This document shows positions 30,101-53,500 of a DNA stretch of 64,000 nt, one piece after another (position 1 is the stretch's first letter; every line of letters begins with the position of its first letter). The DNA comes from Orbicella franksi. Its lineage: Eukaryota. The stretch is taken from positions 2,108,001 to 2,172,000 of the forward strand of contig OZ116712.1 in assembly GCA_964199315.1 (NCBI GenBank). The letters run 5' to 3'. The notes below the pieces were generated by a model that saw nothing but the letters and a program-made list of their open reading frames with translations, was not told where the DNA came from and ran no database searches. A program made the translations under genes and the position numbers.

Positions 30101-33100
30101 CAATAAAACACACATTGGAAAATAACATATTATCAAAGCCGTGTAGAAGACAAAAGTATTCATTGCACTTCTTTTCAATCGCACTATGTTTAAGTTGTCT
30201 CCAGCATTGAAACTTTGCACTGCCAGTTGTTGAGCGTTGATGTGCAACTGATGTCGACGAACAATGCGATAAATTCTGATGTAAGAAAATGAGGAAAATA
30301 CAAGGGAAATTGCAATGACAGCGCCTACAGTAAATCGATATACACTTTCATTCCAAACATCAAACACCGAAACAACCATGCTAATTAACCATAGAGTTAT
30401 TAGAGTATATTGAACACGGGATTGAGTCACTAAAGTAGCATATCTCATGTGATAGTGAAGAGCCAGAAATCGATCCACATTGATGGCTGTTATCGTCAAC
30501 AATGAAACTACACATAAAGAAGACCCTAATAATCTCCAAACGTGGTATGCAAAACCGTGGTCCTCGGTAAGTTGTTGAGCAATGTGAAACGGTTGAGCGA
30601 TGAGACCAACGAGAAAATCTGAAACGGCGAGACTGCAGAGCATAATCGTGTGCGTTGAGCGAATGGAAGGCGTTCTTATTATGGCGGCCAATACCAAAGC
30701 GTTGCCCAGAATGGATATGAGCATCAGTGGAGCGTTAAGAACACAGTTTATGATGACAATTGCAGCAGTAGCGTTTTCTTCCTGATCGGAATGATGCGTT
30801 GTTGATTTGTTGTTGTTTTTGTCCATGTTGTTCATCGTCAAAGTTTAAGTGAATATGAACCGTAGGAGAAGACTTTTTCACGCCATAAGATGTCCAAATA
30901 ATTGAATATATTTTTCGTTGCCGGGAACGCGCATTAAAAGTTACACAAACAGTGGAGACACCAACGCTAAATGTATAAAGTCCAGTTTACGTCATGTTCT
31001 AAAACAGTCGGTGATATTAATTAACCAGTATGCTAATTCCACTTTTCGTGAAATTTGTTCATCACGTAGTAATATTTAAATCAATCGACTAGAGCTTAAA
31101 TTAACTAAAACTGGAATTTCTGTAAGTCGAAGAGAATCTGAGAAAAAATTCTGATTATATGCTCGAGTTTTTGAAATGGAAATTGCCTGACATTATTTAA
31201 TGTGAGTAAGACAGTGTCATTTACTGCTGCACTTAGGAAACCCTGTAGATGAATTAAAAAACACATATGAGGCAATAATTACTTAGTAAAAGACAGCTGT
31301 AAAATTGGTACAGATGACGCTTGTGCTGATTGCTTAGTGCTGATTGAATATCAGCATAAACTTTACCATATTTTTACAGATTGATTTCCATTTTCCTAAA
31401 GAACACGCGTAGCGCTTTAGAAAACGTATGGAGAATAATAAGGAGATTTTGTCTGTTGATATCATTTCCACGGGGACTAATGCTTATATTTGTTCTTTGG
31501 TAGAGAAGAGCAACCTTGGTCCCAGGCCCTCTCTATCTTCAGGGAGCGGGAAGAAGGTTGAGAGAAGGCATCATACCAGTTGTGAATTGACTCGAAACAT
31601 TCAAAGCGGTCTTGAAACTAAGAAATTAGTGAAATGCTTAGCTCTTTAGGTGCCATATTGGAGGAGATTGTAGGCGTTTAAAAGCTGCTAAATTTCTGGT
31701 AGGCATAAACGTTTATGACCCCAAATATTCTGTGTCGAATTTTGAGTGTTTCAATCTGCGTCGAAAACAGTTTTCAGTACAACGGGATGAAATTTCATGG
31801 AGCAGTTGATCGTGACTCTTTCAGAAGGTAGGGAGGTAAAGCCTGCATATGAGCCATGTGGCCCATCAGGCCGGAGCTTATTCCGGTTTCTGTAGCATGA
31901 AGCAACATGGAGTATTTCCACTCCTCCCTGGATGGAATGCTAGTCCATCGCAGGGCTACCCCCAGCATTAAGTTCGCTGGTACCCGGTACTGTAAGCTGA
32001 AGCGGGTTTTTTTATCGTTGGTTTCCATTTAAAACTTGTTACAGACAATATAAAAAGAAAACTTAAAAGCAAACGTTACCTCGTACATGCTGTTCTTTAG
32101 GGATACCCAGTGGAACTACTATCAATTCTCAAACACACCGAAAAAAATTTCGGTGCATAACAATCTAACATCACGAGGTCCTGCAAATTACGTTTATTTC
32201 TTGTTTATTTGTAAATCTACGTCACTACAGAGCTAATAACAAGAGCTGTAAATACCCGGAGATAAAACGAAAATGACTGTCTCACTGTATTCTGTTTATA
32301 TTTCGTTTTGTTCAGAAAGAACATAGCTAGTTTTCTTCTGTTTGGTTACATAACATCTGCCTTGCCGTCTTTACAACTGCCGTTCGAAGCTCGCGAAGAC
32401 GCCAGCAATACAAAAATGGATTAATGGACGAATTCATGAACACTGCAGTAAAAGCAAATTGCCATTCTGTTTTCCAGTCCTTTATGGAGAGTCCATGAAG
32501 AGTCAATAAAACATACATTGGAAAATAACATATAGTCAGAGTTATGTAGAAGACGAAAGTATTCAGTGCACTTCTTTTCAATCGCATTATGTTTAAGTTA
32601 TTTTCAGCGTCAGAACTTTGTACTGCCTGTTGTTGGGCGTGAATTTGTAACTGATGTCGACGAACAATACGATGAATTCTGATGTAAAAAAATGTGGAAA
32701 TTAAAAGACAAATTATAGTAATAATACCTGACAGAAAGCTATGAACACGTTCATTTAAAAAGTAAAATCCTATTGCAAAGGAAGTGGTCAACCATATAAT
32801 TATTAAAGCATATTTAACACGGGATTCAGTCACTAGTGCAGCATATCTCATGTGATAGTGAAGAGCCAGAAATCGATCAACAGTTATTACTGTCATTGTT
32901 AAGAGAGAGGCTCCACATAAAGAAAACCCTATCTGTTTCACTACATGGAGGAACAAACGGTCGTCCGTAAGTACTTGAGCAATGTAAACCGGTTGAACAA
33001 TGAGACCAACGAGAAAGTCTGAAACAGCGAGACTGCAGAGCATAATCATATGCGACGTTGAGCGAATGGAAGGCGTTCTTATTATGGCGGCCAACACCAA

Positions 33101-35567
33101 AGCGTTGCCCAGAATGGATATGAGCATCAGTGGAGCGTTAAGAACACAGTTTATGATGGTAATAGTTTCAGGAGTGGAGTTGACTTCATTGTCTGAATAA
33201 CGGCCTGCCGATCCATTGTTGTGTTTGTAGGTGTTATTAATCATCATGTTTTAACCGCCAGTGTTGTCAAATTGTTTGTCTTTTACACCTAAAGGTGACC
33301 AGACAATACTTTTAGTTTCCTTGAAAAGCACAAAAGAAGAACAGTGGAGACGCCCAACGCCGTGAAAGGGACACAGTTTAGTCCATTTCCTAAAAAAACC
33401 CGGTTATTTTATGTTAAATAAACTTCTTTTCGTGATGTTTTTCATTAATTATGTTGATCAACCATTCATTTTTCCGCAAACAGCGACACCTGTTTATGGC
33501 GGCGTAGGCGTGTAGCTAGAATTTGATCATCGTTTGATGAGAACTTGACGAGCGTTTGGTGAAACGTGTGGTAATTTAGCTAGTCTTTTTAGGTGGAGAT
33601 TATTTAACGTTTTTCATTGCTTTCCTTGATCCTTAAGTACCCTGGAAAATTATATGGATTTGAAAAACAGATGTAATTCACAATTAACGCAGACAAAGTT
33701 GAGACACAGTTGTAAACAAGGTCAGATTGAAGTTTGTGCCTATTGTTGGGACAAGAACACGTGTGATCAAACTTCAGCCGCCTTAAGCACGTTTACATGT
33801 AGTTTCTTTCTTTTTTTCACCTCTTAAGCTAATCTTAAAACAGAGATTTTTCTTTTGTTTTCTAATCCATGTTGAGCGATGCCTGATGAGGTATGGAGGT
33901 TACCTTTGTAGGTACAATCCAATTCTCCATAGTAGTACTAGGAGAAAAATATCGAGAACAGTCAGGAGAATTTGAATGTTGATATCATTGTCACGCAGCT
34001 AATGCTATAAGAAATGTGCTTAGACTGAAAGGTTGACACGAGTGTCCGCATATGGGCAGCTGGTATTTGAAACATCTCAGCGAATCGCGCGGAAGGAGTT
34101 TTATAACTCATTTTCGTCTCTTGTTTATTTTCGAAAATGACTTGTCACTTAATGAATTCAAGTTTTCTTAAAAACTCCTGTCAGCGAGAGAACCGGTAAA
34201 ATGTGGTGAAGTTTGCAAATTAAGCATTGTTTGAATCATTTTACTCAGTAAATAGATCGGAATACGCGGCGCTCAATTTACAAGGGCAGAATTTCTTTTA
34301 GCTTAGCTTCTAATTCTCGACAACTTATTCACGGGTATACATCACTTTTGAATGCAGCTGAACGTGTCATCGAGGAAGTTGCTTTTGTTTGCTTTTCATT
34401 TAGAGTTTATTAAAGGAGGGATATAATAAAAAGCTTTTTTGGAGGTCAATCATTTTATAGAATTGTCAAATACTTGTGAATACTTTTTTTTTTGTCGTTT
34501 TACCATTACTGTTATTGCAAGGAGAAAATATTCCGTGCGCCGCGATCCAGTTTTGAAAGATCATGCAAATGTCGTCTATATCTTGTTTATTTACACTTCT
34601 CCAATAATTCCCGTACTAACAACATGAGCTGCGACACTGAGGCTCACACTGGCGACATAGCGACATAATGACATTTAAGAAATAGAAAACATGTCCTGTG
34701 TCTCTATCGAGTTTTTGTCTAAATCTGCTAGCGTTCTATCACGAATGCCGTTCTCTGATTGGCTACGCTACTCACTATCTTTTCTGTTGTAGATAGTGAG
34801 TAGCCTAGCAGTGTGCCCTTGTTATCAAAATGCCGGCCGATTCTTTGTCTTTTCGAAGTGCCTGAGAAGAGGATATAGATAAAGTTTTAAACGACTAGTA
34901 GATTTATATTAAAGCAACAAAATTATTCGCTCTCGATTTCTGTGTGACAGAAATCTCGAGCTCATAATCTAATTGATTATTCCATAGCTTCTTCGAGTTG
35001 TCCCAAACGTCCACGGGTGTTTCTATAACTCGATAGACACACAGAGAACATGTTTTCTACTTCTTCAGGAAATTCTGCGACGATAAAAATTAAATAACTT
35101 GTTTACTGTGATTATCAAAATGTAAATTCTCTTCTCTTGGGCCATCATTACGTCATAGTTTGTCACGAATTAGATTATTCGCCTTCAATTTCTATACGTT
35201 ATTTTCAGCCTCCAATTGGCCCGATTTATACTGGAGACGGATCATCCGTCTGGGACGAGCTTGGGCAAAGAACAGTAGCTCGTCTGATAATCCGTCTGTG
35301 TAGAAATGCGGGCAGGAGACGAACTATCCACGAAAACTACACCTCCTTGCAAAATGTCTCTTTCGTCTTTTAAATCTGCCCTCAAAACATTCTTGTTTCG
35401 GAAATCCTACTGCTGATTTATTTTATTTTATGAGAAACTGTATTTTAATTAATTATTTCATTTATTTTATTTATTTACTGTTATTAGAAATATTTTATAG
35501 GATTTAACTAATTTATTTTCTATAGTAATGTAAGCGCATTGAGTTTTTTTAAATGCGCCCAAAAAGC

Positions 35568-35614
<47 letters not shown>

Positions 35615-38600
35615 ATAATTGTCACAATAAACACTCCTCTTTATTTTTTAAAAAAAATTATTATTATTATTATTATTAAAACGCCAGCGGCTGTTTTCAG
35701 TAAACTATTAATTCAAGATGACACTGGACGAGTATCAGGACACACCGATACTTCGTCTCATAGTCCTTCCCGTATTTATACTAGACGGATGATCCGTCTT
35801 GACGGATGAATTGTCTCTAGTATAAATCGGGCCAGCTTGTGTAAGGATATACATAACTTGTAAATGCAATCGGAATGCTATGAGCTGAAGACGGTTTCTA
35901 TGGTTGGTTTTCATTTAAAACTTGTCACATACAATTTAAAAAGAAAACTAAAAAGCAAAGTTTATCTTGTACGTGATCTTATTTATGGATCGATCTAACA
36001 TCGCGAGGCCTCTTAGGTCCTGCAAATGACGTTTATTTCTTGTTTATTTACAAATCTTCGTCATTACAGAGCTAACAACAAGAGATTTAAATCACCTAGG
36101 GAGAAAGTAAAAATGACTATCTAACTGAATTCTGTTCGTATTTTATTTTGTCCAGAAAGAAGATAGCTAGTTTTCTTCTGTTTGTTTACATAACATCTGC
36201 TTTGCTGTCTTCAAAACTGCCGCGCGAAGCTCGCGAAGACGCCAGCAATACAAAAATGGATTGATGGACGAGTTACTAAATACCAAACTATAGACAAATG
36301 TCCATTCTGTTTGCCAGTCTTTGTCAGAGGTTCCATACCGAATTGACAAAACATACAACGGAAAATAACATACAGTTAGAACTATGTAGAAGACGAAGGT
36401 ATTCATTGCACTTCTTTTTAATCGCGTTATGTTTACGTTATTTGCGGCGTCAGAACTTTGCACTGCCTGTTGTTGAGCGTGAATTTGTAACTGATGTCGA
36501 CGAACAATACGACAAATTCTGACGTAAGAAAACGCTGAAATTTGAAGGCATGTGACAATAAGAACGCCAACAAGAATGCTATATACACGCTCATTCCAAA
36601 GTCCGAAACCAGATACAAGGAAACTAATCAACCATATAATTACCAAAGTAAATTTAACACGGGATTCAGTCACTAAGGTAGCATAGGTCATGTGATAGTG
36701 AAGAGCCAGAAATCGATCCACAGTGATGGCTGTTATTGTCAACAGAGAAACTACACAAAAAGAATACCCTGACATCACTGCAACATGGTAGACGTAACGG
36801 CGTTTCAAGAGTAGATCACCAATATAAATCGGTTGAGCAATGAGACCAACAAGAAAATCTGAAACAGCGAGACTGCAGAGCATAATCATGTGCGTTGAGC
36901 GAATGGAAGGCGTTCTTATTATGGCGGCCAATACCAAAGCGTTGCCCAGAATGGATATGAGCATCAGTGGAGCGTTAAGAACGCAGTTTATGATAATAAA
37001 AGTTTCAGGGGTTGAGTTGTCTTCATTGTCTGGATGATGGTTTGCCGATCTGTTGTATTTGTTGGTGTTGCTCATCGTTGATGTTGAAGATCAGCTTCTA
37101 ATGTTGTCTCAGAACTAAAAAGCGGACCAAGTAATCCTCCTTTTCCGTTCAACAAAAAAATATGCCAAAACTGTACAAACAGTGGAGACCCAACAGCAGG
37201 ACAAGAGCACAGTTAAATGAAGTTTTTGACAGAAACCTAGATTCTAAACAAGTCTTTTTGCTGACGTTTTCCGGAGTTATGTTCATCACTTATTCACCTT
37301 TTGTTTTGCTTTGTTTTTGTTTTCTTGAAAAAGCGATCTTGGTTTCTGGTGAGAGTGCCATATAATTAGAGTTGGACTTGCATCGTAAAGATAATTCAAG
37401 TGCGTTTGATTAAACTTTTTGATTTACACAGTTTGCCTTTTTAGATGGAAATTGCTTTGCATCATTACGCTGTAATAGAACTTTTCATTGCTTTCTTATT
37501 CATGGAGCAGCCTTAGTATTGGCTGAGGACCTCTATAAGTCAATGCTGGAAAGTAAACATCGTTACTCTAAATAAAGTGCAGTTAAAACTATTGAGGAGA
37601 AATTTTAATTTTGTATGACTGACGAACAAAAGAAAAATAAAATAGCAGTTCTGGTCTCTTACGTGAGCTTCCTTAGGTCGACGAAATAACTAAAAATAAA
37701 AAAGCAGGTGTTATTTGAGCTTCGTCTTTAGCCACGCCACCATTTACTTCTATTATCTCCAAGCAAATCGAGAAAATTTTCATTGCGTCTCGATATAACA
37801 TCACAAAGTTCTGCAAGAATCAATTGTGCCTTGCTTATTTGCATTTTTCTATGGTTTTCGTTCAGAAAAAAAAAAAATGTCTAGTGTCCTTCTGTTTGTT
37901 TACATAACATCTGTCTTGCTGTCTTTAAAACTGCCGTTCGAAGCTCACGAACACGCCAACAATACAAAAATGGATTGATGGACGAATTAAGGAATATGAA
38001 GGTTGAAGCAAAGTCCCAATCTATCTGAAAATTCCACTGTGAGATTGCATTTACTGTTAATACAATGTACAATGGAAGATAACATACAATCAAAGCTATG
38101 AAGAAGACGAAAGTGTTCCGTGCACTTTTTTCCACTTTTTTCCGCGCAATGTTTAAGTTGTTTTCCGCGACCGAACTTTGCACTGCCTGTTGTTGAGCGT
38201 GAATTTGTAGTTGATGCCGGCGAGCAATTTGAAAAATCCTCATGTGAGATAGTGTTGAAATTATAAGACAAATGAGAATAACAAGGCCCATACTAAGGTG
38301 TTGTGCATTTGTATTCCAAAACTTCAAACACGATAAAAGGAAACTAAACAACCATATAATTATTATAGTATATTCAACACGGGACTCAGTCACTAAAGTA
38401 GCATATCTCATGTGATAGTGAAGAGCCAGAAATCGATCGACAGTGATAGCTGTTATTGCTATGAGAGACACGACAGAAAAAGAACTCACTGTTATTTTCC
38501 AAACAAGGTAAATGGAATCGTCTTCCGTAAGTTCGTTAGCAATATAGATCGGTTGAGCAATGAGACCAACAAGGAGATCTGAAACAGCGAGACTGCAGAG

Positions 38601-41600
38601 CAAAATGATGTGCGTTGACCGAATGGAAGGCGTTCTTATTATGGCGGCCAATACCAAGGCGTTGCCCAGAATGGATATGAGCATCAGTGGAGCGTTAAGA
38701 ACACAGTTTATGATGATAGTAGTTTCAGGAGTAGAGTTGTCTTCATTATTTGAATTACGGTCCGTCGATGCTTTTTTGAGTCCGGGGTTACCTGGGCTGT
38801 CCATGATCAACGCTTGATATGAACTCGTAGTATTTCAAATCCTTGATTTGAGCAGAAAAGTGCAGCAAATTATTTTTCTTTTTCATTCCACCGAAAAGGA
38901 CGTAATTAGACTGGTCAACAGTGGAAAAGCCACCTCCGCGAATCCAACGCAATTAAGCCGGTGCATCGTCTAAACGAGACCTTGATCAAACTTGCTCCTC
39001 CACCTTACATTTTTCCTGAATGTGTTGAGTCCCCTTTTAATCTTTTCCAAAAAAGCGACAGCGGTTTGTGCTGAGATTGGCATGTAATTCATATACTCAG
39101 AATTGGTCCAACAATGCAAATATAACTGAAAGATGGTTTCATTTAATTTCGAGTGATTTTTTTGTGTTTGTCTTCACTCTATTCAGTAATGACACAGTTT
39201 TTCATTTCTTCTCGGCCCTTGTTCATCAAGCATTTTTTTGACGCATTGAAAAACACTTACGAGACAATACTAGCTCACACCGGGAAAGTAAAGAAAAAGA
39301 ACAGTTTTAAACAAAGTAAAAATGAAGTTTGTGCTGATTGTTTGGACAATATTATAGAGCTTACTTAGCTCTAACTCCTTCAGAGTAAACATCGCTTGAA
39401 GATGCATTTGGAAGTTGTATAGAGGCGGGCTTCTTCTATTTGGGTCTCATTTAAAATTCATGGCATGCGAAATATCAGCGAAAATAAAATTGAAAACAAC
39501 GTTTTATATCCTAGGTGATCTTCTTTAGGAATCTGATCTGCAACTTCTCTCAATATTTCAATACACTGAGGAAAATTTCAGTGCACCTCGATATAACTTT
39601 ACGAAGTCGTGGAATCGTCGTTTACATCTGGTTTAATGAGAAATATTCATTGTAGTTGAGCTGATGACATCAGCTGCGAAGCGAACTGGGAACCGACGAA
39701 GCAAACAAACTTGCTCTCTCTCTGTATTTTGTTAATATTTATTTTCGTTCACAAGATGAACACTAGTTTACTTCCGTTTGTTGACAAAATACCTGCTTTG
39801 CTGTTTTTACAATTGCCGCACGGAGTTCACGAAGACGCTAGCAATACAAGAATGGATTAATACAAGAGTTGCTGAACACTAGGGTAGAAGAAAATTTCCA
39901 TCCTATCTTCCAGTCCTTACTGACAGACGAAACTATATACAGCGGAAAATAACAAATAATTAAAACTATGTAGAAGAGAAAAGTGTTCATTGCAGTTCTT
40001 TTCAATCGCGTTATGTTTAAGATGTTTTCAGCGTCGGAACTTTCCACTGCCTGTTGTTGAGCGTTAATGTGCAACTGATGTCGACGAACAATGCGATAAA
40101 TTCTGATGTAAGAAAATGTGGAAATTATAAGACAAATGACTATAAAAACGCCTATAAGACAGATTTGTACACTTATTTTCCAAAAATAAAAAAATGGTAT
40201 AAGTAAACTAATCGACCATATGATTATTACAACATATTTAACACGGGATTCAGTCACTAAGGTAGCATATCTCATGTGATAGTGAAGAGCCAGAAATCGA
40301 TCCACAGTGATGGCTGTTGTTGTCAACAGAGAAACTCCACATAAGAAAGGTCCTATAATGTTCCAAACGTAATTAACGTAACGGCCTTTCGTAAGTTGTT
40401 GAGCGATATAAATCGGTTGAACAATGAGACCAACGAGAAAGTCTGAAACAGCGAGACTGCAGAGCATAATCTTGTGCGGCGTTGAGCGAATGGAAGGCGT
40501 TCTTATTACGGCGGCCAATACCAAAGCGTTGCCCAGAATGGATATGAGCATCAGTGGAGCGTTAAGAACACAGTTTATGATGGTAATAGTTTCAGGAGTA
40601 GAGTTGACTTCATTGTCTGAATAACGGTCTGCCGATCCATTGTTGTGTTTGTAGGTGTTATTAATCGTCATGTTTTAACCGCCAGTGTAATCAAACTGTT
40701 TTTCTTTTACCCCTAAAAGTGACCAGACAATACTTTTGTTTCGTTGAAAAGCACAAAAGAAGAACAGTGGAGACGCCCAACGCCGTGAAAGGGACACAGT
40801 TTAGTCCATTTCCTGAAAAACCCGGTTATTTTATATTAAATAAACTTCTTTTCGTGATGTTTTTCATTAATTATGTTGATCAACCATTCCCTTTTTCCGC
40901 AAACAGCGACACCTGTTTATGGTAACGTAGGCGTGTAGCTAGAATTTGAGACATCGTTTGATGAGAACTTGATGAGCGTTTGGTAAAACGTCTGGTAATT
41001 TATCTGGTCTTTTTAGGTAGAGATTATTTAACGTTTTTCATTGCTTTCCTTGATCCTTAAGTACCCTGGAAAATTATATGGATTTGAAAAACAGATGTAA
41101 TTCACAATTAATGCAGACAAAGTTGAGACACTGTTGTAAACAAGGTAAAATTGAAGTTTGTGCTTATTGTTCGGACAAGATCAAACTTCAGCCGCCTTAA
41201 ACACGTTTACATGTAGTTTCTTTCTTTTTTTCACCTCTTTAGCTAATCTAAAAACATAGATTTTTCTTGTTTTCTAATCCCTGTTGAGCGGTGCCTGATG
41301 AGGTATGGAGGTTACCTTTGTAGGTACAATCCAATTCTCCATAGTAGTACTAGGAGAAAAATATCGAGAACAGTCAGGAGAATTTGAATGTTGATATCAT
41401 AGTCACGCAGCTAATGCTATAAGAAATGTGCTTAGACTGAAAGGTTCGCACGAGTGTACGCAAATGGACAGCTGGTATTTGAAACATCTCAGCGAATCGC
41501 GCGGAAGGAGTTTTATAACTCATTTTCGTCTCTTGTTTATTTTCGAAGATGACTTGTCACTTCATGAATTCAAGTTTTCTTAAAAACTCCTGTCAGCGAG

Positions 41601-44600
41601 AGAACCGGTAAAATGTGGTGAAGTTTGCAAATTAAGCATTGTTTGAATCATTTACTCAGTAAATAGATCGGAATACGCGGCGCTCAATTTACAAGGGCAG
41701 AATTTCTTTTAGCTTAGCTTCTAATTCTCGACAACTTATTCACGGGTATACATCACTTTTGAATGCAGCTGAACGTGTCATCGAGGAAGTTGCTTTTGTT
41801 TGCTTTTCATTTAGAGTTTATTAAAGGAGGGATATAATAAAAAGCTTTTTTGGAGGTCAATCATTTTATAGAATTGTCAAATACTTGTGAATACTTTTTT
41901 TTTGTCATTTTACCATTACTGTTATTGCAAGGAGAAAATATTCCGTGCGCCGCGATCCAGTTTTGAAAGATCATGCAAATGTCGTCTATATCTTGTTTAT
42001 TTACACTTCTCCAATAATTCCCGCGCTAACAACATGAGCAGCAACACTGAGGCTTCGCTCACACTGGCGACATAACGACATAATGACATTTAAGAAATAG
42101 AAAACATGTCCTGTGTCTCTGTCGAGTTTTTGTCTAAATCTGCTAGCGTTCTATCACAAATGCCGTTCGCTGATTGGCTACGCTACTCACTATCTATTCT
42201 GTTGTAGATAGTGAGTAGCCTAGCAGTGTGCCCTTGTTATCAAAATGCCGGCCGATTCTTTGTTTTTTCGAAGTGCCTGAGAAGAGGATATAGATAAAGT
42301 TTTAAACGACTAGTAGATTAATATTAGAGCAACAAAATTATTCGCTCTCGATTTCTATGTGTGACAGAAATCTCGAGCTCATAATCTAATTGATTATTCC
42401 ACAGCTTCTTCGAGTTGTCCCAAACGTCCACGGGTGTTTCTATAGCTCGATAGACACACAGAGAACATGTTTTCTACTTCTTCAGGAAATTCTGCGACGA
42501 TAAAAATTAAACAACTTGTTTACTGTGATTATCAAAATGTAAATTCTCTTCTCTTGGGCCATCATTACGTCTTAGTTTGTCACGAATTAGATTATTCGTC
42601 TTCGATCTCTATACGTTATTTTCAGCCTCCAATAGGCCCGATTTATACTGGAGACGTATCATCCGTCTGGGACGAGCTTGGGCAAAGAACAGTAGCTCGT
42701 CCGATAATCCGTCTGTGTATAAATGCGGGCAGGAGACGAACTATCCACGAAAACTACACCTCCTTGCAAAACGTCTCTTTCGTCTTTTAAATCTGCCCTC
42801 AAAACATTCTTGTTTCGGAAATCCTACTTCTGATTTATTTTATTTTATGAGAAACTGTATTTTAATTAATTATTTCATTTATTTTATTTATTTACTGTTA
42901 TTAGAAATATTTTATAGGATTTAACTAATTTATTTTTTATAGTAATGTAAGCGCATTGAGTTTTTTTAANNNNNNNNNNNNNNNNNNNNNNNNNNNNNNN
43001 NNNNNNNNNNNNNNNNNNNNNNNNNNNNNNNNNNNNNNNNNNNNNNNNNNNNNNNNNNNNNNNNNNNNNNNNNNNNNNNNNNNNNNNNNNNNNNNNNNNN
43101 TTTGCTTAGAGTCCTTAGGGCCGAGACCAAACCATGGTCCTGGGGCACTAAGGGATAGCCAGTTTTTAGCTTGATAGCACCCTCCTCAAAATGTGTGCTG
43201 TACCTAGCAAGGTTATCTTTTGTAGTTCACTGATGCTTAATTGGCCGGGAATTCTTCCAAGATAAGTTTCTAGTCCCTTTTTGATAGCTCCAAGTGCTCT
43301 AATGATAACTGGTATCGTTTCCGTTCTCATGCCCCACATTCGGCTTGTTTCGATTTCCAAGTCCTTATATTTGGATAGTTTTTCACTGACTTTCACGGAT
43401 GTGTTTCTGTCTGATGGTACTGGCATGTCAATAAATTTACAGGTTTTCGTTTTGTGGTCTTTAATCACTATATCGGGTCTGTTGGCTGTTATTTTCCTGT
43501 CTGTGTGTATTGGCATGTCCCATAATATCGTGACATCCTCGTTTTCTGTAACTGTTTGCGGCTCATGGTCATACCACTTTTCTGATGTCTTTATATTATA
43601 GTTGTGACAGACTTTCCAGTGTATATACGCGGCTGCTTTATCGTGTCTGTGGGTATATTCTGTTTTCGCAAGGTCAGGACACCCAGACACGATATGGTCA
43701 ATTGTTTCGTCGTATTTGTTACACATCCTGCATAGGGGGCTAGTACCGTCTTTGATAATGCTGGCGTGGTATGATCTGGTAGCTAGGCTTTGGTCTTGGG
43801 CTGCGATTATGAATCCTTCCGTTTCTGCCTTCAGTCCACTGCTTTTGAGCCACTGGTTGGTTTTGTGGTGGTCAACATCTGCCTCCTTTATTCTCTTTGG
43901 GTATCTTCCATGTAGGGCTTTGTTCTCCCACTGCTTTGTTAATTTTTCTTGGGTCTTATTTCGTGCCATTTGTTTGGTTCTCTTTGCATATTTGGTGGTT
44001 GTTTCTTCTGCTTGTTTATCTGGTATTGTTAGGTCTAGTTCTTGTTTGAATTGTTCTGCTTGCCTTTGTATAGAGTACAATTTCTTTCTGCCATCATGTT
44101 CTTGCACTAGTTTAATTAGGGCATCATCAGTGTTCTTTAGGTATGTATCGAGCCCTATCGTGGTTGTTTTGTAGGAGGCTTCTAATTGGATAAGACCCCT
44201 ACCACCAGCATTTCTTGGGAGGTAGAGTCTGTCTACATCTGCTATTTTTGATAGGGTGAGTAGTTTTCTTGTTTTTGTGTCTAACCTCTTGATTTCACTC
44301 ATCTTCCAGTCGATTATGTTAAAGTGCAGCTAACCCCAAAATTTTGTTTTCGCTAAAACGAATCTAGACTTTATTCGAAGCATTTGGGCGAAGAAATTTT
44401 TGAATTTGGTTGAATCCTCGATTTTCTATGCCCTTTCAAAGTCGCGCTTGAAGGTTTCACGACCGCGTTTTAGGGAGTCTGGGGCGGCGGTACCTGATGA
44501 CGTCTACCCAGGAACCAAACACAATGGCGCCTCAGTCAACTCTCTGTATTTGCTCGAGAAAATGGAACACAAAACTAATCGTTCCGATGTATTTTGGGAC

Positions 44601-46682
44601 TAAAACGTCCAAGTTTTGTCTCAGAATCATTTCTTTTTCGTCACTGGAGTCAGAGTTAAGTTTCGATTCGGAAGACTCCGAAATAAACTTCGATCGAGCA
44701 CGTTCGACAACTGTGAACTCACTGCTTAGAGCTTTGAGAGCAATTTACAATATTTCAAACGACGAAGGGGAAGACTTCTTTGCGGACGAGTTGCTTGTAT
44801 ATTAGGAATGGAAAGCTAGATACGAAGTGGAGGAGCAGGCAAACGAAAAGCAGGAAAGAAAACTCAAGGACTGCTTTGGATGGTAATTTCGTCAACTAAA
44901 CATAAGATTCCCACGCGTGTTTATAGCCCGTTTACATTTGTCCTTAGCGAGAATGTATTTTATCAAGGTGTGATTGTTCTGTTAAATCCAGCTTGTGTTT
45001 TACTTTCAGTTGAATGCTTCATGTTTATAAGAGCGACGTACGTGTCGCAGTTTTCGAGACTTGATGACCTCCAAAACATTGGCTTCGATCGATTGAAAAT
45101 CGTATTGTTTGGACCTGTATTTTTGAAGCTGCGGGAAGCAAGGCGGAAGGAAACATTTCATACAATTACCGATTTCACATTGTCACACGTTTTAAGTCGT
45201 AACTCCAAAAAACCAATGTAAATTGTTCTCAAAGTTTGCAGCGAAATTCGTCGGATAAGCGAAAAGGATGTGTTCCCTAAGCGGTCCGCACATGTTACGC
45301 GGTCATATTTTCGACGCTATATCACAGAATCTTTGTCGCACTGCTGATTTCCAAACCTTCGAAAAACTCTGTGAGTCTAACAATTTTGTTATCATGTAAT
45401 TCTAAAGGATTAATCTTCGACTTTTATCTAAATCGAAAGAGAAATAAGTGTTGGTTAGCGGCGTACAGTTGCGATCTATTTACATATCAGTATAACGCTT
45501 CTTGATCATGATCGGATCACACAACTTTGTATGTTACAAATACTGCGGGATTGGAAGATATAGGTTGTAGGTAGTATTTCTACAAATTGCTGGTTAGCTT
45601 TAGGCAGAAAATTTATGAAAATAGCGTTCGAAAGTCTGCGGAACAAATTCCAGTGAGAGTTCTTCAATGGTTCTCACAGATTCAGTTCGCTTGTTTCGGT
45701 TCGACAAAATCAACCATCGTTTACGTCTTTGTTGCACCATTAGCCGATCATCGTCAGTTAATTGTACAGTATATCTTTCTTTAAATCTGGAATATTGCTG
45801 CAACAGCCGATAGCACCTCTGGAAGGCGTTTCTGCGCACTTTTCGAATGTGTATTGCACCATCCTGAAGGAAATGAGAGGACGTCAGATATCCAACCTTC
45901 CTGGGTAGACGTCACAAGAGCCGCTAGACCCATTCTCCTCAAACTCGGTCGTGAAACAAAATGGCGGTGTTTTGGAGCTATTTTCGAGATTTCGTCGGGG
46001 CACAGAAAATCGAAGATTTAACGGAATCCAAAAATTTTTTCGCAGAACTATTTCAAATAACAAGGAGATTCGTTTTAGCGAAAAAAAATTTTTGGGGTTA
46101 GGTGCACTTTAAAACTGTAGGTCACCGCTGGGATAGCTAAGGTGTTGATTGCCTCAAATCTATTGGCAGCATTGAGCTCCGTTTTTAGGACCATCCTTAC
46201 TCTGCGGTAGTATTCCTTCCTCACTCTTTCTTTCATCTTGGCATGCTGTATACCATCACCTTCATCCACGCCAAGGTATTTATATGTGTTCTCTTGGTCT
46301 AGTTCCTTGATACAGGTGTCAATGTCAAGTTGTAAATCGGAAGTTTCTGTCAGCTTTCCTCTTTTGAATGTGGCTTTAGCGCATTTGTCCAGCCCGAATT
46401 CCATCTTGATATCATTGCTGAATGTCTTTACAATATTGAGTAGGCCGGTTTGCTGGCTGTCACTTTTTGCATATGTTTTTAGGTCGTCCATATAAAAGAG
46501 GTGGCTGATTGTTCTACCCTGGGCTTCATACCCATAAGTGGTTGCCTTTAGTAATGAGCTCAGTGGAGCAAGGGCAAGACAGAACAGGAGTGGAGAGAGT
46601 CTCCTTGAAAGATTCCACTTTTGATATTGATAGGCCTTGATGTTATTGACCCTTCAGCGTGGTTGAGGTGTTTATTATTATA

Positions 46683-46727
<45 letters not shown>

Positions 46728-47538
46728 GAGCACTTTTCATACAAACTTGAATCTTACATGTATCTGGTAAAAAATTCAGAAATTCTGTTGTTCCTTAAGT
46801 TTTCGGTAATTATAATAGTAATAATAATATCAAAATAATAATAATAATAATAATGATTTATTATTATTATTAACTTAAGGAACAACAGAATTTCTGAATT
46901 TTTTACCAGATACATGTAAGATTCAAGTTTGTATGAAAANNNNNNNNNNNNNNNNNNNNNNNNNNNNNNNNNNNNNNNNNNNNNNNNNNNNNNNNNNNNN
47001 NNNNNNNNNNNNNNNNNNNNNNNNNNNNNNNNNNNNNNNNNNNNNNNNNNNNNNNNNNNNNNNNNNNNNNNTTTTAACTTATGGTGCCGAGTTCAATCCG
47101 TGAGCCTAGGGCAGTCATGAGTCTGCTGGATTACTTGATGGATAGAGTCCTCCTAAGTATGTGAGCAGTTCCAAGGACGGTCTTCTGTAGCTCTGTTATT
47201 CTAATATTGCCTGGGATCTTGCCGATGTAGTTTTCTGTTCCCTTCTTGACAAGCCCGAAAGCTCCAATGATCACTGGGACAGTTGTTTTCATTCCCCACG
47301 TTTTCTCGATTTCAATCTCAAGATCCTTGTACTTTGTGAGTTTTTCCATTGTTTTCAAGGAGGTGTTCCTTTCTGTGGGGATGGACATATCGATAAGCAG
47401 ACAGGTTCTTTCCTTCTTGTCTTTCACCACTATGTCTGGTCTGTTTGCTTTTATCTCTTTGTCGGTTTGGATTGGCATGTCCCAAAGTATAGTCGCTGTT
47501 TGGTTTTTTGTCACAGTAGCTGGTTCATGTTCGTAGTG

Positions 47539-47583
<45 letters not shown>

Positions 47584-50500
47584 GTTATTACCGATAGTGA
47601 CGTTGAAACCCAGGAGGGAGCCATTATTTAAACACTGTTGAAATAGGTTTTAATAGTTTATTTCTTCTTTTACTTACTTTTACCTTGTATATACCTCATT
47701 TATAAAAAAAAAAAAAAAGTAGTAGTAGTAGTAGTATTAGCATTAGTTTTTTTTTTTTTTTTTATTATTGTTGTTGTTGTTGTTGTTGTTGTTGTTATTG
47801 TTATTGTTATTGTTATTATTAAAACGCCAGCGGCTGTTTTCAGTAAACTATTAATTCAAGATGACACTGGACGAGCCGCAGGACACACCGATAGTTCGTC
47901 TCATAGTCCTTCCCATATTTATACTAGACGGATGATCCGTCTTGACGGATGATCCGTCTCTAGTATAAATCGGGCCAGCTTGTGTAAGGATATACATAAC
48001 TTGTAAATGCAATCGGAATGCTATGAGCTGAAGACGGTTTCTATGGTTGGTTTTCATTTAAAACTTGTCACATACAATTTAAAAAGAAAACTAAAAAGCA
48101 AAGTTCATCTTGTACGAGATCTTATTTATGGATCGATTTAACATCGCGAGGCCTCCTAGGTCCTGCAAATGACGTTTATTTCTTGTTTATTTACAAATCT
48201 TCGTCATTACAGAGCTAACAACAAGAGATTTAAATCACCTAGGGAGAAAGTAAAAATGACTATCTAACTGAATTCCGTTCGTATTTTATTTTGTCCAGAA
48301 AGAAGATAACTAGTTTTCTTCTGTTTGTTTACATAACATCTGCTTTGCTGTCTTCAAAACTGCCGCGCGAAGCTCGCGAAGACGCCAGCAATACAAAAAT
48401 GGATTGATGGACGAGTTACTAAATACCAAACTATAGACAAATGTCCATTCTGTTTGCCAGTCTTTGTCAGAGGTTCCATACCGAATTGACAAAACATACA
48501 ACGGAAAATAACATACAGTTAGAACTATGTAGAAGACGAAGGTATTCATTGCACTTCTTTTTAATCGCGTTATGTTTACGTTATTTGCGGCGTCAGAACT
48601 TTGCACTGCCTGTTGTTGAGCGTGAATTTGTAACTGATGTCGACGAACAATACGACAAATTCTGACGTAAGAAAACGCTGAAATTTGAAGGCATGTGACA
48701 ATAAGAACGCCAACAAGAATGCTATATACACGCTCATTCCAAAGTCCGAAACCAGATACAAGGAAACTAATCAACCATATAATTACCAAAGTAAATTTAA
48801 CACGGGATTCAGTCACTAAGGTAGCATAGGTCATGTGATAGTGAAGAGCCAGAAATCGATCCACAGTGATGGCTGTTATTGTCAACAGAGAAACTACACA
48901 AAAAGAATACCCTGACATCACTGCAACATGGTAGACGTAACGGCGTTTCAAGAGTAGATCACCAATATAAATCGGTTGAGCAATGAGACCAACAAGAAAA
49001 TCTGAAACAGCGAGACTGCAGAGCATAATCATGTGCGTTGAGCGAATGGAAGGCGTTCTTATTATGGCGGCCAATACCAAAGCGTTGCCCAGAATGGATA
49101 TGAGCATCAGTGGAGCGTTAAGAACACAGTTTATGATGATAAAAGTTTCAGGAGTTGAGTCGTCTTCCTTGTCTGAATGATGGTTTGCCGATCCGTTGTA
49201 TTTGTTGGTGTAGCTCATCGTTGATGTTTAAGATCAGCTTCTAAAGTTGTCTTAGAACTAAAAAGTGGACCAAGCAATTTTCCTTTTTCGTTCAGCTAAA
49301 AATATGTCAAAACTGTACAAACAGTGGATACCTAACACCATGAAAACATCACAGTTTAATGAAATTTCTAACAGAGACCTTGATTCTAAATGAGTCTTTT
49401 TGCTGACGTTTTCCGGAGTTATGTTCATTTTATTATTCATCTTTTGTTTTTTGTTTTGTTTTTTCTTGAAAAAGCGATCTTGGTTTCTGGCGAGAGTGCC
49501 ATATAATTAGAGTTGGACTTGCATTGTAAATATAATTCAAGTGCGTTTGATTAAACTTTTTCATTTACACAGGTTGCCTTTTTAGATGGAAATTGCTTTA
49601 CATTATTAAGCTGTAATAGAACTTTTCATTGCTTTCTTATTCATGGAGCAGCCTTAGTATTGGCTGAGGACCTCTAGAAGTCAATGCTGGAAAGTAAACA
49701 TCGCTCCTTTAAATAAAGTGCAGTTAAAACTATTGAGGAGAAATTTTAATTTTGTATGACTAACGAAACAAAAGAAAAATAAAATAACAGTTTTGCTCTC
49801 TCACGTGAGCTTCCTTAGGTCGACGAAATAACGAAATAACTAAAAATAAGAAAAAGCAGGTGTTGTTTGAGCTTCGTCTCTAGCAACGCCACCATTTACC
49901 TCTATTATCTCTAAGCAAATCGAGAAAATTTTCATTGCGTCTCGATATAACATCACAAAGCTCTGCAAGAATCAATTGTGCCTTATTATATTTGCAATTT
50001 TCTATGGTTAGTGCACTAAGAATATGAGCTATAAAACGAACTGAGAACTGACCGTGAAAACGAAAGATTGCTTTGTGGCTGTACTCTGGTTATTTTTCTT
50101 TTCGTTCAGAAAAAAAAATGTCTAGTGTTCTTCTGTTTGTTTACATAACATCTGTCTTGCTGTCTTTAGAACTGCCGTTCGAAGCTCACGAACACGCCAG
50201 CAATACAAAAATGGATTGATGGACGAATTAAGGAATGTTAAGGTAGAAGCAAAGTTCCATTCTATTTGAAAATTCCACTGTGAGATTGCATTCACTGTTA
50301 ATACAATGTACAATGGAAGATAACATACAATCAAAGCTATGAAGAAGACGAAAGTGTTCCTTGCACTTTTTTCCACTTTTTTCCGCGCTATGTTTAAGTT
50401 GTTTTCCGTGTCCAAACTTTGCACTGCCTGTTGTTGAGCGTCAATTTGTAGTTGATGCCGACGAGCAATTTGAAAAATCCTCATGTAAGATAGTGTTGAA

Positions 50501-53500
50501 ATTATAAGACAAATGAGAATAACAAGGCTTGTACTAAGGTGTTGTGCACTTGTATTCCAAAACTTCAAACACGATAAAAGGAAACTAAACAACCATATAA
50601 TTATTATAGTATATTCAACGCGGGACTCAGTCACTAAAGTAGGATATCTCATGTGATAGTGAAGAGCCAGAAATCGATCGACAGTGATAGCTGTTATTGC
50701 TATAAGAGACACCACAGATAAAGAACTCACTGTTATTTTCCAAACAAGGTGAATAGAACCGTCTTCCGTAAGTTCTTTAGCAATATAAATCGGTTGAGCA
50801 ATGAGACCAACAAGGAGATCTGAAACAGCGAGACTGCAGAGCATAATCATGTGCGGTGAGCGAATTGAAGGCGTTCTAATTATGGCGGCCAATACCAAGG
50901 CGTTGCCCAGAATGGATATGAGCATCAGTGGAGCGTTAAGAACACAGTTTATGATGATAGTAGTTTCAGGAGTCGAGTTGTCTTCATTGTCTGAATGACG
51001 GTCTGCCGATCCTTTTTGGAGTTCGTGGTTACTTGGGTTGTCCATGATCAACGTTTAAGATTTAAATTCTTGATTTTTGAGCAGGAAAGTGCAGACAATA
51101 ATTTTTCCTTTTCATTCCACCGAAAAGGACGTAATTAAACTGGTCAACAGTGAAGACGCCACCTCCTCGAATCCAACGCAGTTAAGCCGGTGCATCGTCT
51201 TAATCAAACTTGCTCCTCCACCTTACATTTTTTCTGAATGTGTTGAGTCCCCTTTTAATCTTTTCCAAAAAAGCGACAGCGGTTTGTGCCGAGATTGGCA
51301 TGTAATTCATGTACTCAGAATTGGTCCAACAATGCAAATATAACTGAAAGATGGTGTGATTCAATTTCGAGTGATTTTTTGTGTTCACTCTATTCAGTAA
51401 TAACACAGTTTTTCATTTCTTCTCAGCCCTTGTTCATCAAGCAATTTTTTGACGCATTGAAAAACACTTACGAGACAATACTAGCTCATACCGGGAAAGT
51501 AAAGAAAAAGATTAGTTTTAAACAAAGAAAAAATGAAGTTTGTGCTGATTGTTTGGACAACAGTATAAAATCTACTTAGCTCTAACTCCTACAGAGTAAA
51601 CATCGCTTGAAGATGCATTTGGAAGTTTTATAGAGGCGGGCTTCTTCTATTTGGGTCTCACTTAAAATTCATGACATACGAAATATCAATGAAAATAAAA
51701 TTGAAAACAACGTTTTATATCCTAGGTGATCTTCTTTAGGAATCTGATCTGCAACTTCTCTCAATATTTCAATACACTGAGGAAAATTTCAGTGCACCTC
51801 GATCTAACTTGACGAAGTCTCTCTCTTTGCATTGTGTTAATATTTAATTTCGTTCAAAAAATGATTACTAGTTTACTTCCGTTTGTTGACATAATACCTG
51901 CTTTGCTGTTTTTACAATTGGCGCACGGAGTTCACGAAGACGCCAGCAATACAAAAATGGATTGATACAAGAGTTGCTGAACACTAGGGTAGAAGAAAAT
52001 TTCCATCCTATCTTCCAGTCCTTACTGACAGACGAAACTATATACACCGGAAAATAACAAATAATTAAAACTATGTACAAGACAAAAGTGTTCATTGCAC
52101 TTCTTTTCAATCGTGTTATGTTTAAGTTGTTTTCAGCGTCAGAACGTTCCACTGCCTGTTGTTGAGCGTTAATGTGTAGCTGATGCCGACGAACAATGCG
52201 ATAAATTCTGATGTAAGAAAATGTGGAAATTATAAGACAAATGACTATAAAAACGCCTATAAGAAAGATTTGTACACTTATTTTCCAAAAATAAAAAAAT
52301 GGTACAAGTAAACTAATCGACCATATGATTATTAAAAGATATTTAACACGGGATTCTGTCACTAAAGTAGCATATCTCATGTGATAGTGAAGAGCCAGAA
52401 ATCGATCCACAGTGATGGCTGTTATTGTCAGTAGAGAAACTCCACATAAGAAAGGTCCTATAATCTTCCAAACGTAATTAACGTAACGGTGTTTCGTAAG
52501 TTGTTGAGCGATATAAATCGGTTGAGCAATGAGACCAACAAGGAGATCTGAAACAGCGAGACTGCATAGCATAATCATGTGCGGCGTAGAGCGAATGGAA
52601 GGCGTTCTTATTATGGCGGCCAATACCAAAGCCTTGCCCAGAATGGATATGAGCATCATTGGAGCGTTGAGAATACAGTTTATGATGGTGACAGCTTCTC
52701 GAGTAGAGTTGTCTTCATTGTATGAATGATTTTCTCCCGAGCTGTTGTCGTGTAGGTCGATATTGTTCATTATCGAAACTGATTATGAATTCGTAGCGTC
52801 AGTGGTAAATTCTTGATTTAAGCTAAAATGTTGTCAAAAGTATGTTCTTTTCGTTCCGGCGAAAAGCCTGATGTCAGAAAACTGGTCAAATACTGAAGAC
52901 GCCTGTACTATGATAACAACACAGTTTAGCTCTGCACCGGTTTGTGTTTCATTGTGAATATAACCCAATAGCGTTTGATTAAACTGCGGTTGATTTTTGG
53001 GAGACTTTTCAAGATGGAAATTACCTTCTATTATTCAATGCAACCTTTCATTTCCTCTATTATTCATCAAGCACCCTGCTAATGATGCCCGCCGATCTTC
53101 GAGTTATTACAACCTCAAGGAGAGCAAACAACAGCAATAAAGCATGCTAAAATTGACGATTGTGCTAAGTTTTGAGACAATGAAATAAAAATTATCTTCA
53201 ACTTAGTCAGGTTATTTTGTCTGTCAATCGAATGCTCAATCAGTACTGATAACAACAAACTTTATTTCTCCCATTCAGTCCACATACCGATATTTACACT
53301 TAATTAATAAAGAGATGGGGGGTGCGGGCTGGCTTCGGAAATAACTACAAAGTCAAAGGGGGCAGGCAGGCAGTCAGTAATAGTGAACTAGTTATTGCCC
53401 TCTGTTTTACATAATAGGTTGCCATAGCAACAGTATAACCTGTAAAACGCCCTGAATTTTGGCTCAATGCTTGTTGCTTATAGCTCAAAAACGAACTTGG

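Follow-up and report, generated by a model that had tools for sequence, protein, structure and literature searches.

A hybrid receptor gene at the joint of a three-gene tandem duplication in a coral GPCR array

How did a single receptor gene come to carry the 5' part of one neighbour and the 3' part of another? The question is raised by GPCR-11, a G-protein-coupled receptor (GPCR) gene in a 64,000-nucleotide stretch of Orbicella franksi DNA, referred to below as the window (contig OZ116712.1; G000:C15:2108001-2172000 within a 497-Mb assembly). With a probability of roughly 80% we attribute this gene to a lineage-specific tandem duplication by non-allelic homologous recombination (NAHR, here an unequal crossover), followed by homogenisation of the copies, insertion of transposable elements and a nonsense change in the hybrid. 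GPCR-8, GPCR-9, GPCR-10 and GPCR-14 are also called genes A, B, C and D, while GPCR-12 and GPCR-13 are the second copies B' and C'. Sites and sequences resembling GPCR-8 are termed A-type and those resembling GPCR-14 D-type.

Two colinear units and the switch inside GPCR-11

The genes stand in the order 8-9-10-[11 hybrid]-12-13-14 and form two direct colinear units with both parental genes kept at the outer ends. This order had been claimed in the original prediction; it holds in a three-way alignment of GPCR-8, GPCR-11 and GPCR-14 with their flanks and in a self-BLAST of the window, which yields four colinear blocks (32053-35552 with 39481-42969, 35658-37856 with 47801-50009, 37855-39608 with 50099-51819, and 39714-40648 with 51819-52753). 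The colinear flanks run for kilobases on both sides of the joint at 93-97% identity. Since there is no N within 32990-42969, the joint and both copies of the GPCR-8 upstream DNA (Aup in unit 1, Aup' in unit 2) lie on uninterrupted sequence, as had been stated. Arithmetically, the predicted 7,424 bp for unit 1 and 12,105 bp for unit 2 are correct, but the latter rests on estimated N runs and on a nested transposon that is absent from other samples, and the length of unit 2 is therefore haplotype-specific.

Two further features of this region deserve mention. The 3' flank of the hybrid includes 106 bp (39608-39714) for which the GPCR-14 3' flank (51818/51819) has no counterpart; since unitigs of four runs contain this segment, it is an old indel and a unit-1-specific marker. 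The GPCR-8-type upstream DNA also contains a high-copy repeat (41970-42570, with a paralogue at about 34560-35150). In four runs the summed k-mer depth at 41970-42570 reaches 17,000 to 276,000, and joints and loose ends are numerous there; dozens of copies at 85-87% are found on other chromosomes.

The change from one parent to the other was located using the informative sites of the three-way alignment. To the left of 40414, 141 of 155 sites are D-type and 14 A-type; to the right 124 of 133 are A-type and 9 D-type (141:14 against 9:124, Fisher test p=7.6e-53). Hence the predicted mosaic, GPCR-8-type in its 5' part and upstream DNA and GPCR-14-type in its 3' part and flank, is borne out. In most 50-base windows left of about 40410, GPCR-11 equals GPCR-14 at 46-50 of 50 positions and GPCR-8 at only 27-46. 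Right of this point the similarity inverts, and the resemblance of GPCR-11 to GPCR-8 extends over 2.3 kb of upstream DNA. Most of the contrary sites are private differences of GPCR-8 or GPCR-14 alone compared to all other paralogues, i.e. later changes.

The precision of the junction is somewhat lower than the 7 bp originally proposed. In the unpolarised alignment the last GPCR-14-type site is indeed 40413 and the first GPCR-8-type site 40421, and a likelihood scan has its optimum between these two positions (adjacent intervals are only 2.44 log-likelihood units worse). For polarisation the A and D orthologues of a related coral were used, and 168 sites were kept at which A and D differed before the duplication. 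These sites show a single switch, the last validated D-type site being 40408 and the first validated A-type site 40438. Sites 40421 and 40435 carry derived states common to GPCR-8 and both hybrids, so they were counted as A-type. At 40413 the C is private to GPCR-8 (the outgroup A orthologue has T). Because this site is uninformative and the last polarised D-type site is 40408, the robust interval becomes 12 bp (40409-40420). The heptamer CGGTTGA was confirmed by position search at 32990, 40414 and 52519, as reported; it is however not specific to the junction. It occurs 14 times in the window, at the same Gln-Pro codons at the end of transmembrane helix 2 (TM2) in almost all paralogues, and hence represents a motif conserved in the family rather than a special microhomology.

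The switch keeps register, falling on the same codon of both parents, and its place is the C-terminal edge of a block comprising TM1, the first intracellular loop (ICL1) and TM2. Among eight paralogues the mean proportion of synonymous differences is 0.113 within this block against 0.398 in the rest of the gene (3.5 times lower), which suggests that either recombination homogenises the block or its nucleotide sequence is under constraint. For about 200 bp to the right of the switch, GPCR-8 and GPCR-14 agree at 41-47 of every 50 bases, compared with 29-34 of 50 on its left; in percent, their identity is roughly 90% in the block and 60-70% just outside. The crossover had been placed at the TM2 end of the conserved block, and the switch does fall at the edge of this approximately 90%-identical segment. 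The block is thus likely to have been the homology substrate of the crossover: an in-register exchange that is resolved where homology ends is what NAHR predicts.

Independent contigs and the ancestral gene order

A protein search with the hybrid, followed by DNA alignment of the matching contigs to the window, revealed a 277-amino-acid product with 97% identity on the ENA contig ERZ25767047:ctg35099_1x_c (22,031 bp; the 22-kb contig below). This contig is colinear with window positions 42969-35658 at 97.8%, crosses the joint along the path A-type upstream DNA, hybrid, GPCR-10, GPCR-9, and its hybrid has the same switch point as that of the window. Unit 2 is represented by four other contigs (L015, L016, L019 and L020), which are colinear with its right part at 98.4-98.9% compared to only 92-95% with unit 1; two of them also reach the unique flank of unit 2. 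In distance matrices the copies of the 22-kb contig group with unit 1 (0.008-0.017) and L015 and L016 with unit 2 (0.007-0.022), whereas the two groups differ by 0.054-0.087. On these distances, the units are best seen as old, separate loci in several samples.

The sequencing runs show a similar tendency. Runs X1, X3, X4, X10 and X13 contain 0.53-0.69 of the sampled 31-mers of both upstream copies (42% of these words are common to both), and unitigs specific to unit 1 (including 39608-39714) as well as unitigs specific to the hybrid's upstream DNA occur in four organisms. A genome search of the assembly yielded no other copy of the joint and no alternative haplotig. When homologues of GPCR-8 were searched, the best relative was located on a 3.2-kb contig, whose length is insufficient to reveal the left part of unit 1 or an unduplicated haplotype of the same species.

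The unduplicated four-gene arrangement that had been predicted is found in a related coral. Contig ERZ25067546:ctg58452_39x_l, with 82-90% nucleotide identity to the window, carries in single copies the order Nup160-like, D, C, B, A-type upstream DNA, A and a G7-like gene, and no hybrid is present on it. The same Nup160-like fragment adjoins the array here (90.5% over 484 bp) and on contig L015. Since the divergence from this outgroup exceeds that between the units, the duplication is younger than the outgroup split. The gene list of the contig with P0005 likewise includes Nup160 and then four GPCR-type genes. Separately, P0008 was considered as a second hybrid and rejected: it is a D orthologue with a lost start codon.

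Divergence layers and the origin of the joint

Divergence between the units is not uniform. Three layers can be distinguished (0%, about 3% and 5.5-8.7%; Table 1), and contrasts between young and old layers are significant (p=2e-4 to 6e-3). The identical 816-bp tract shared by GPCR-9 and GPCR-12 has a chance of 1.6e-11 even at 3% divergence and is, judged by its identity, a signature of recent gene conversion. As the divergence of Aup between samples is not low (0.021), the young layers point to later homogenisation and not to a slow rate. The simplest account would be one NAHR event, then a long conversion or an expansion-contraction cycle, and then a recent conversion of B. The non-uniform age thus calls for later conversion or unit turnover, without contradicting an NAHR origin.

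According to the proposed course of events, the ancestral order would have been A-B-C-D, consisting of intronless class-A GPCR genes. NAHR pairing gene D of one chromatid with gene A of its partner would then yield A-B-C-[D/A hybrid]-B'-C'-D, with the exchange resolved at the TM2 end of the 165-bp TM1-TM2 block, which appears to evolve in concert among all paralogues. The hybrid would later have gained its TGG>TAG change after the NPxxY motif, the part from Aup to B would have been homogenised in both units (to about 3%, then to 0% over 816 bp of B), and transposons would have inserted into unit 2. The original prediction of an unequal crossover between the ancestors of GPCR-8 and GPCR-14 finds support in the in-register hybrid, the surviving parents, the colinear flanks, the outgroup order and the independent contig. 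We infer a meiotic unequal crossover as the mechanism, and likewise the order of the later events; sequence cannot fully tell such a crossover from NAHR of the break-induced replication (BIR) type. Also, the switch point seen today could mark where a later conversion tract, or the latest exchange, ended, and not the original crossover.

Several observations weigh against this reading. Support for the joint comes from assembled contigs rather than from raw reads of the assembled individual, and just one independent contig crosses it, with 1x coverage and a circular flag set by its assembler. No listed unitig bridges 40414 (Logan, four runs on 36970-42969; unitigs of 200-630 bp that break in the conserved block). 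The left part of unit 2 (to 42969) and its right part (from 47072) are linked in this assembly alone. Furthermore, one crossover by itself is insufficient to produce the three layers of divergence.

Could the tandem structure be an artefact, in which two diverged alleles of a four-gene haplotype were assembled one after the other with a false join in the conserved block? Coral genomes are heterozygous, there are two N runs in unit 2, and the units diverge by 3-6%, only a little more than alleles do. Nonetheless the joint is free of gaps and at most 12 bp are shared at the switch, while a second assembly from another sample shows the same joint, the same TAG and hybrid-specific sequence on both sides. 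Moreover, copies of unit-1 type and unit-2 type form separate lineages, about 6% diverged, in five other contigs, and several runs from different organisms hold both upstream copies. Such an artefact is therefore very unlikely. A replication-based template switch (fork stalling and template switching or microhomology-mediated BIR, FoSTeS/MMBIR) with a short shared motif as microhomology would fit the observation that the parental genes of today share no more than 7-12 identical bp at the switch. We consider it quite unlikely, given that the joint connects matching codons of two paralogues in register and is at the edge of a block about 90% identical over some 200 bp, without inserted or templated bases; microhomology joints have no reason to keep homologous register. 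Gene conversion alone was rejected as the origin of the mosaic GPCR-11, as colinearity extends kilobases past the gene on both sides.

The divergence layers bring in another possibility: an older duplication of B-C-D with an intact second D, after which ectopic gap repair or a long conversion from the A-B interval made the hybrid by substituting A-derived sequence for the 5' end of this D copy, for its upstream DNA and for B'. The hybrid joint would then be younger than the duplication of the units and not its crossover. Aup (0.028-0.030) and the B 3' flank (0.031) are indeed less diverged than the B 5' flank, C, the C-D intergenic DNA and D-left (0.054-0.087), the between-sample figure for Aup speaks against a slow rate, and both ends of the young zone coincide with TM1-TM2 blocks (40409-40420 and 36982/36983). 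This scheme, however, requires one more duplication, whose non-homologous joint is unseen, as well as repair that replaced heterologous DNA, and neither alignment nor genome search reveals a remnant of D-type upstream DNA near GPCR-11. One NAHR event with conversion in continuous homology explains the same data with fewer events, which makes the two-step course rather unlikely.

Another aspect concerns the copy number of the unit. The 22-kb contig comprises 2.77 units of 7,956 bp with a hybrid in each, and each of these units turns from unit-2 type to unit-1 type near 47894-47915 / 35751-35772, a pattern that secondary NAHR between units would give. Over about 6.2 kb there is no difference among its three copies, and all variation between them is confined to the retrotransposon fragment, the microsatellite and the 3' part of B. 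We lean slightly towards the view that the array is real and has at least three units. The repeats might also have arisen in assembly, from a cycle of the graph through the homogenised B region, considering the 1x coverage, the circular flag and the near-identity of the copies. The copy number of the hybrid-bearing module may vary between individuals or species. In every unit of the ERZ25767047 contig (L013/L014, e.g. L013:13597-14503) the GPCR-9-type gene is disrupted, being split into ORFs (open reading frames) of 135 and 168 amino acids; the GPCR-10-type gene is intact (307 amino acids).

Fate of the hybrid, the surrounding array and its meaning

GPCR-11 combines an A-type promoter, N-terminus, TM1 and TM2 with a D-type part from the first extracellular loop (ECL1) through TM7. 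One residue past NPFLY it has TAG where every paralogue has TGG; in the outgroup, the D gene (298 amino acids) has this Trp intact. Beyond the TAG the old frame has stayed open, with its sequence conserved, as far as the ancestral stop 24 codons downstream; the remaining frame is intact. All three hybrid copies of the 22-kb contig have the TAG in common. Given that another sample carries the same codon and that the old frame is still conserved, the nonsense change is apparently fairly old and a single event, by which helix 8 and the tail (24 residues) would be removed. Between the hybrids of the window and of the other sample there are 2 synonymous and 7 non-synonymous changes, which gives a ratio of non-synonymous to synonymous divergence (dN/dS) of about 1 on tiny counts, against 0.35-0.5 for the other pairs. 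This pattern fits relaxed constraint, small as the counts are. Since translation would stop directly behind NPxxY, before helix 8 and the tail, the hybrid is probably decaying and its function presumably lost. An exact-product look-up for GPCR-11 returned no record.

Within unit 2, colinearity with unit 1 ends at 42969 (35552 in unit 1) and resumes at 47801 (35658): 105 bp of microsatellite-like DNA in unit 1 correspond to 4.8 kb in unit 2. Both N runs lie in this interval, in repeat-rich DNA between the hybrid's upstream DNA and the GPCR-12 3' flank, and are crossed by no receptor frame. Genome search matches were reported at coordinates inside both runs (window 43051-43085 and 46965-47051), and the runs may be masked simple-repeat letters rather than true gaps. 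On the 22-kb contig the equivalents of 42969 and 47072 are about 148 bp apart in alignment coordinates, with sequence homologous to the unit 1 microsatellite, and the 3.8-kb piece 43101-46939 is absent. In the window this piece includes a retrotransposon-like element interrupted by a nested inverted-repeat element (Table 1). Pfam searches on the transposon ORFs gave only sub-threshold matches to RVT_1 and zf-RVT. The nested 1,794-bp element has 36 other copies among the matches listed (92-100%, 35 of them at 96% or more), spread over many chromosomes and several at 100%, which makes it look like a DNA transposon that was active very recently. The two pieces of the outer element overlap by about 5 bp in intact copies, which suggests a short target-site duplication. 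The retrotransposon fragment at 47072-47589 is present in unit 2 and the 22-kb contig, and absent from unit 1 and JGI contig L019 (3300008037). Past the GPCR-12 3' flank the latter contig is unit-1-like (L019:5007-5159, window 35657-35521) up to its end, 152 bp past B'. Since it continues in this way without the fragment, the insertion is polymorphic or lineage-specific.

Table 1. Positions and between-unit divergence of features at the duplicated receptor locus (window coordinates).
Feature	Position	Strand	Remarks
Unit 1	32990..40413		7,424 bp; GPCR-8 5' part and upstream DNA, GPCR-9, GPCR-10, hybrid 3' part; self-BLAST, three-way alignment
Unit 2	40414..52518		12,105 bp as assembled; includes two N runs and transposon insertions
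Switch interval, D-type to A-type	40409..40420		12 bp; contains 40414-40420
TM1-ICL1-TM2 block of hybrid (IINC...GLIVQ)	40417..40581	-	55 codons, 165 bp
Premature TAG	39838..39840	-	TGG in GPCR-14; directly after NPFLYC
GPCR-8 (gene A)	32327..33247	-	306 aa (amino acids), intronless class-A GPCR; PF00001 E=1e-24; outgroup orthologue 82%; donor of hybrid 5' part
GPCR-9 (gene B)	36167..37075	-	302 aa
GPCR-10 (gene C)	37881..38804	-	307 aa counted from first ATG
GPCR-11 (hybrid)	39838..40671	-	277 aa; PF00001 E=2.4e-29
GPCR-12 (B')	48310..49218	-	302 aa
GPCR-13 (C')	50122..51045	-	307 aa counted from first ATG
GPCR-14 (gene D)	51868..52770	-	300 aa; donor of hybrid 3' part; own upstream DNA, beside Nup160-like gene
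Nup160 C-terminal-like gene fragment	~54292-55126		upstream of GPCR-14
Aup, GPCR-8 upstream DNA	33248..35552		paralogous to 40672-42969; Kimura two-parameter distance (K2P) 0.030
Aup', duplicated GPCR-8-type upstream DNA	40672..42969		now 5' of hybrid; self-BLAST
N run 1	42970..43100		intergenic; begins where the unit 1 microsatellite-like stretch (35553-35657) starts
N run 2	46940..47071		intergenic
5'-truncated retrotransposon-like element	43101..46671	-	pieces 43101-44323 and 46109-46671; uninterrupted copies at 98-99% elsewhere in genome
Inverted-repeat element nested in retrotransposon	44319..46112		1,794 bp; ~115-bp terminal inverted repeats
Retrotransposon 3' fragment	47072..47589	-	microsatellite-flanked; contiguous with GPCR-12
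A-type upstream DNA			between-unit divergence 0.028-0.030
B 3' flank			between-unit divergence 0.031
B coding body	36167-36982 = 48310-49125		816 bp identical (GPCR-9 and GPCR-12); ends at 5' edge of B's TM1-TM2 block
B 5' flank			between-unit divergence 0.087
C			between-unit divergence 0.056
C-D intergenic DNA			between-unit divergence 0.062
D-left			between-unit divergence 0.054

The duplicated genes belong to a larger array of at least 12 intronless ORFs in the window, each of about 300 amino acids and on the minus strand. All ORFs tested match Pfam PF00001 (7tm_1), with scores of 87.9 bits for GPCR-8, 103.1 for GPCR-11 and 97.0 for GPCR-14 (gathering cut-off 30.5). Class-A GPCR motifs are visible in the translations: GNALV (the Asn of TM1), LAVSDFLVGL (LxxxD of TM2), DRF (the D/ERY-type motif after TM3) and NPFLY (NPxxY of TM7). 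The closest named relatives are coral predictions annotated as histamine H2, melanocortin or adenosine receptor-like, at 66-76% identity, and the public runs that hold the window stretch are labelled as coral metagenome or with coral organism names.

Elsewhere in the array, the region of GPCR-4 to GPCR-7 (21897-30841) contains a segment, 21897-24098, that matches 25332-27546 at 91.7%. Both of these copies match GPCR-7 (29922-30781) at about 90%, from the stop codon to some 60 bp before the start codon; these matches represent homogenisation of the coding body ending near the TM1-TM2 block, as in GPCR-9 and GPCR-12. A second cluster of the same GPCR family is located about 0.65 Mb away (G000:C15:1458163-1517000, loci L004-L012). 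Matching hits are spaced 21,527 and 18,565 bp apart here (e.g. 1471470, 1492997 and 1511562), and a multi-gene module appears to be repeated about three times.

Comparable arrangements are known from anti-Lepore haemoglobin and from the red/green opsin arrays, which are NAHR duplications with an in-register hybrid gene and for which further expansion and contraction is expected. The coral locus resembles them in the unequal crossover of tandem paralogues, the in-frame hybrid at the unit joint and the parents kept at the ends. It differs in that the module consists of three genes of a chemoreceptor-like GPCR array and that the hybrid has a nonsense codon; a haplotype with the reciprocal deletion was not seen among the contigs found, all of them too short to show one. 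Concerted evolution and gene conversion are also familiar from tandem receptor arrays such as those of vertebrate olfactory receptors. The coral array shares with them the long stretches of identity between adjacent paralogues and a synonymous divergence that is lowered locally, whereas the homogenised segment here is one 55-codon TM1-TM2 block common to all paralogues in the window.

In corals, the rhodopsin-like GPCR is reported to be the commonest domain among tandemly amplified orthogroups (34 of 192; Noel et al. 2023, PMC10236652). The present locus is one such array; while that study counts families, here one event is followed to 12 bp together with its ancestral state and conversion layers. 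For phased Acropora genomes, unequal crossing over or BIR between nearby similar sequences has been proposed, with the duplicated units triggering more NAHR (PMC12314368). The same mechanism is proposed here, but transposons are stressed there as homology substrate, against a concerted coding block within receptor genes in our case.

Summarizing, the locus is a well-resolved instance of a known process, not a new process, and leaves the existing view of how such arrays evolve unchanged; the concerted block and the divergence layers are of modest added value. Few such events have been resolved to the base. As one locus displays the ancestral state, the in-register joint, the fate of the hybrid, the conversion layers and dated transposon insertions, it is a useful worked example. 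It also provides a PCR-testable marker for copy-number variation in coral chemoreceptor-like arrays. More tentatively, the near-identity of the TM1-TM2 block at synonymous sites may mean that it acts as a shared recombination cassette, at whose edges crossovers and conversion tracts start or end: the hybrid joint lies at the 3' edge of the block and the identical tract of GPCR-9 and GPCR-12 at its 5' edge. If this doubtful reading is true, coral GPCR arrays could repeatedly re-pair promoters and N-termini with other ligand-binding bodies, and expand or contract modules.

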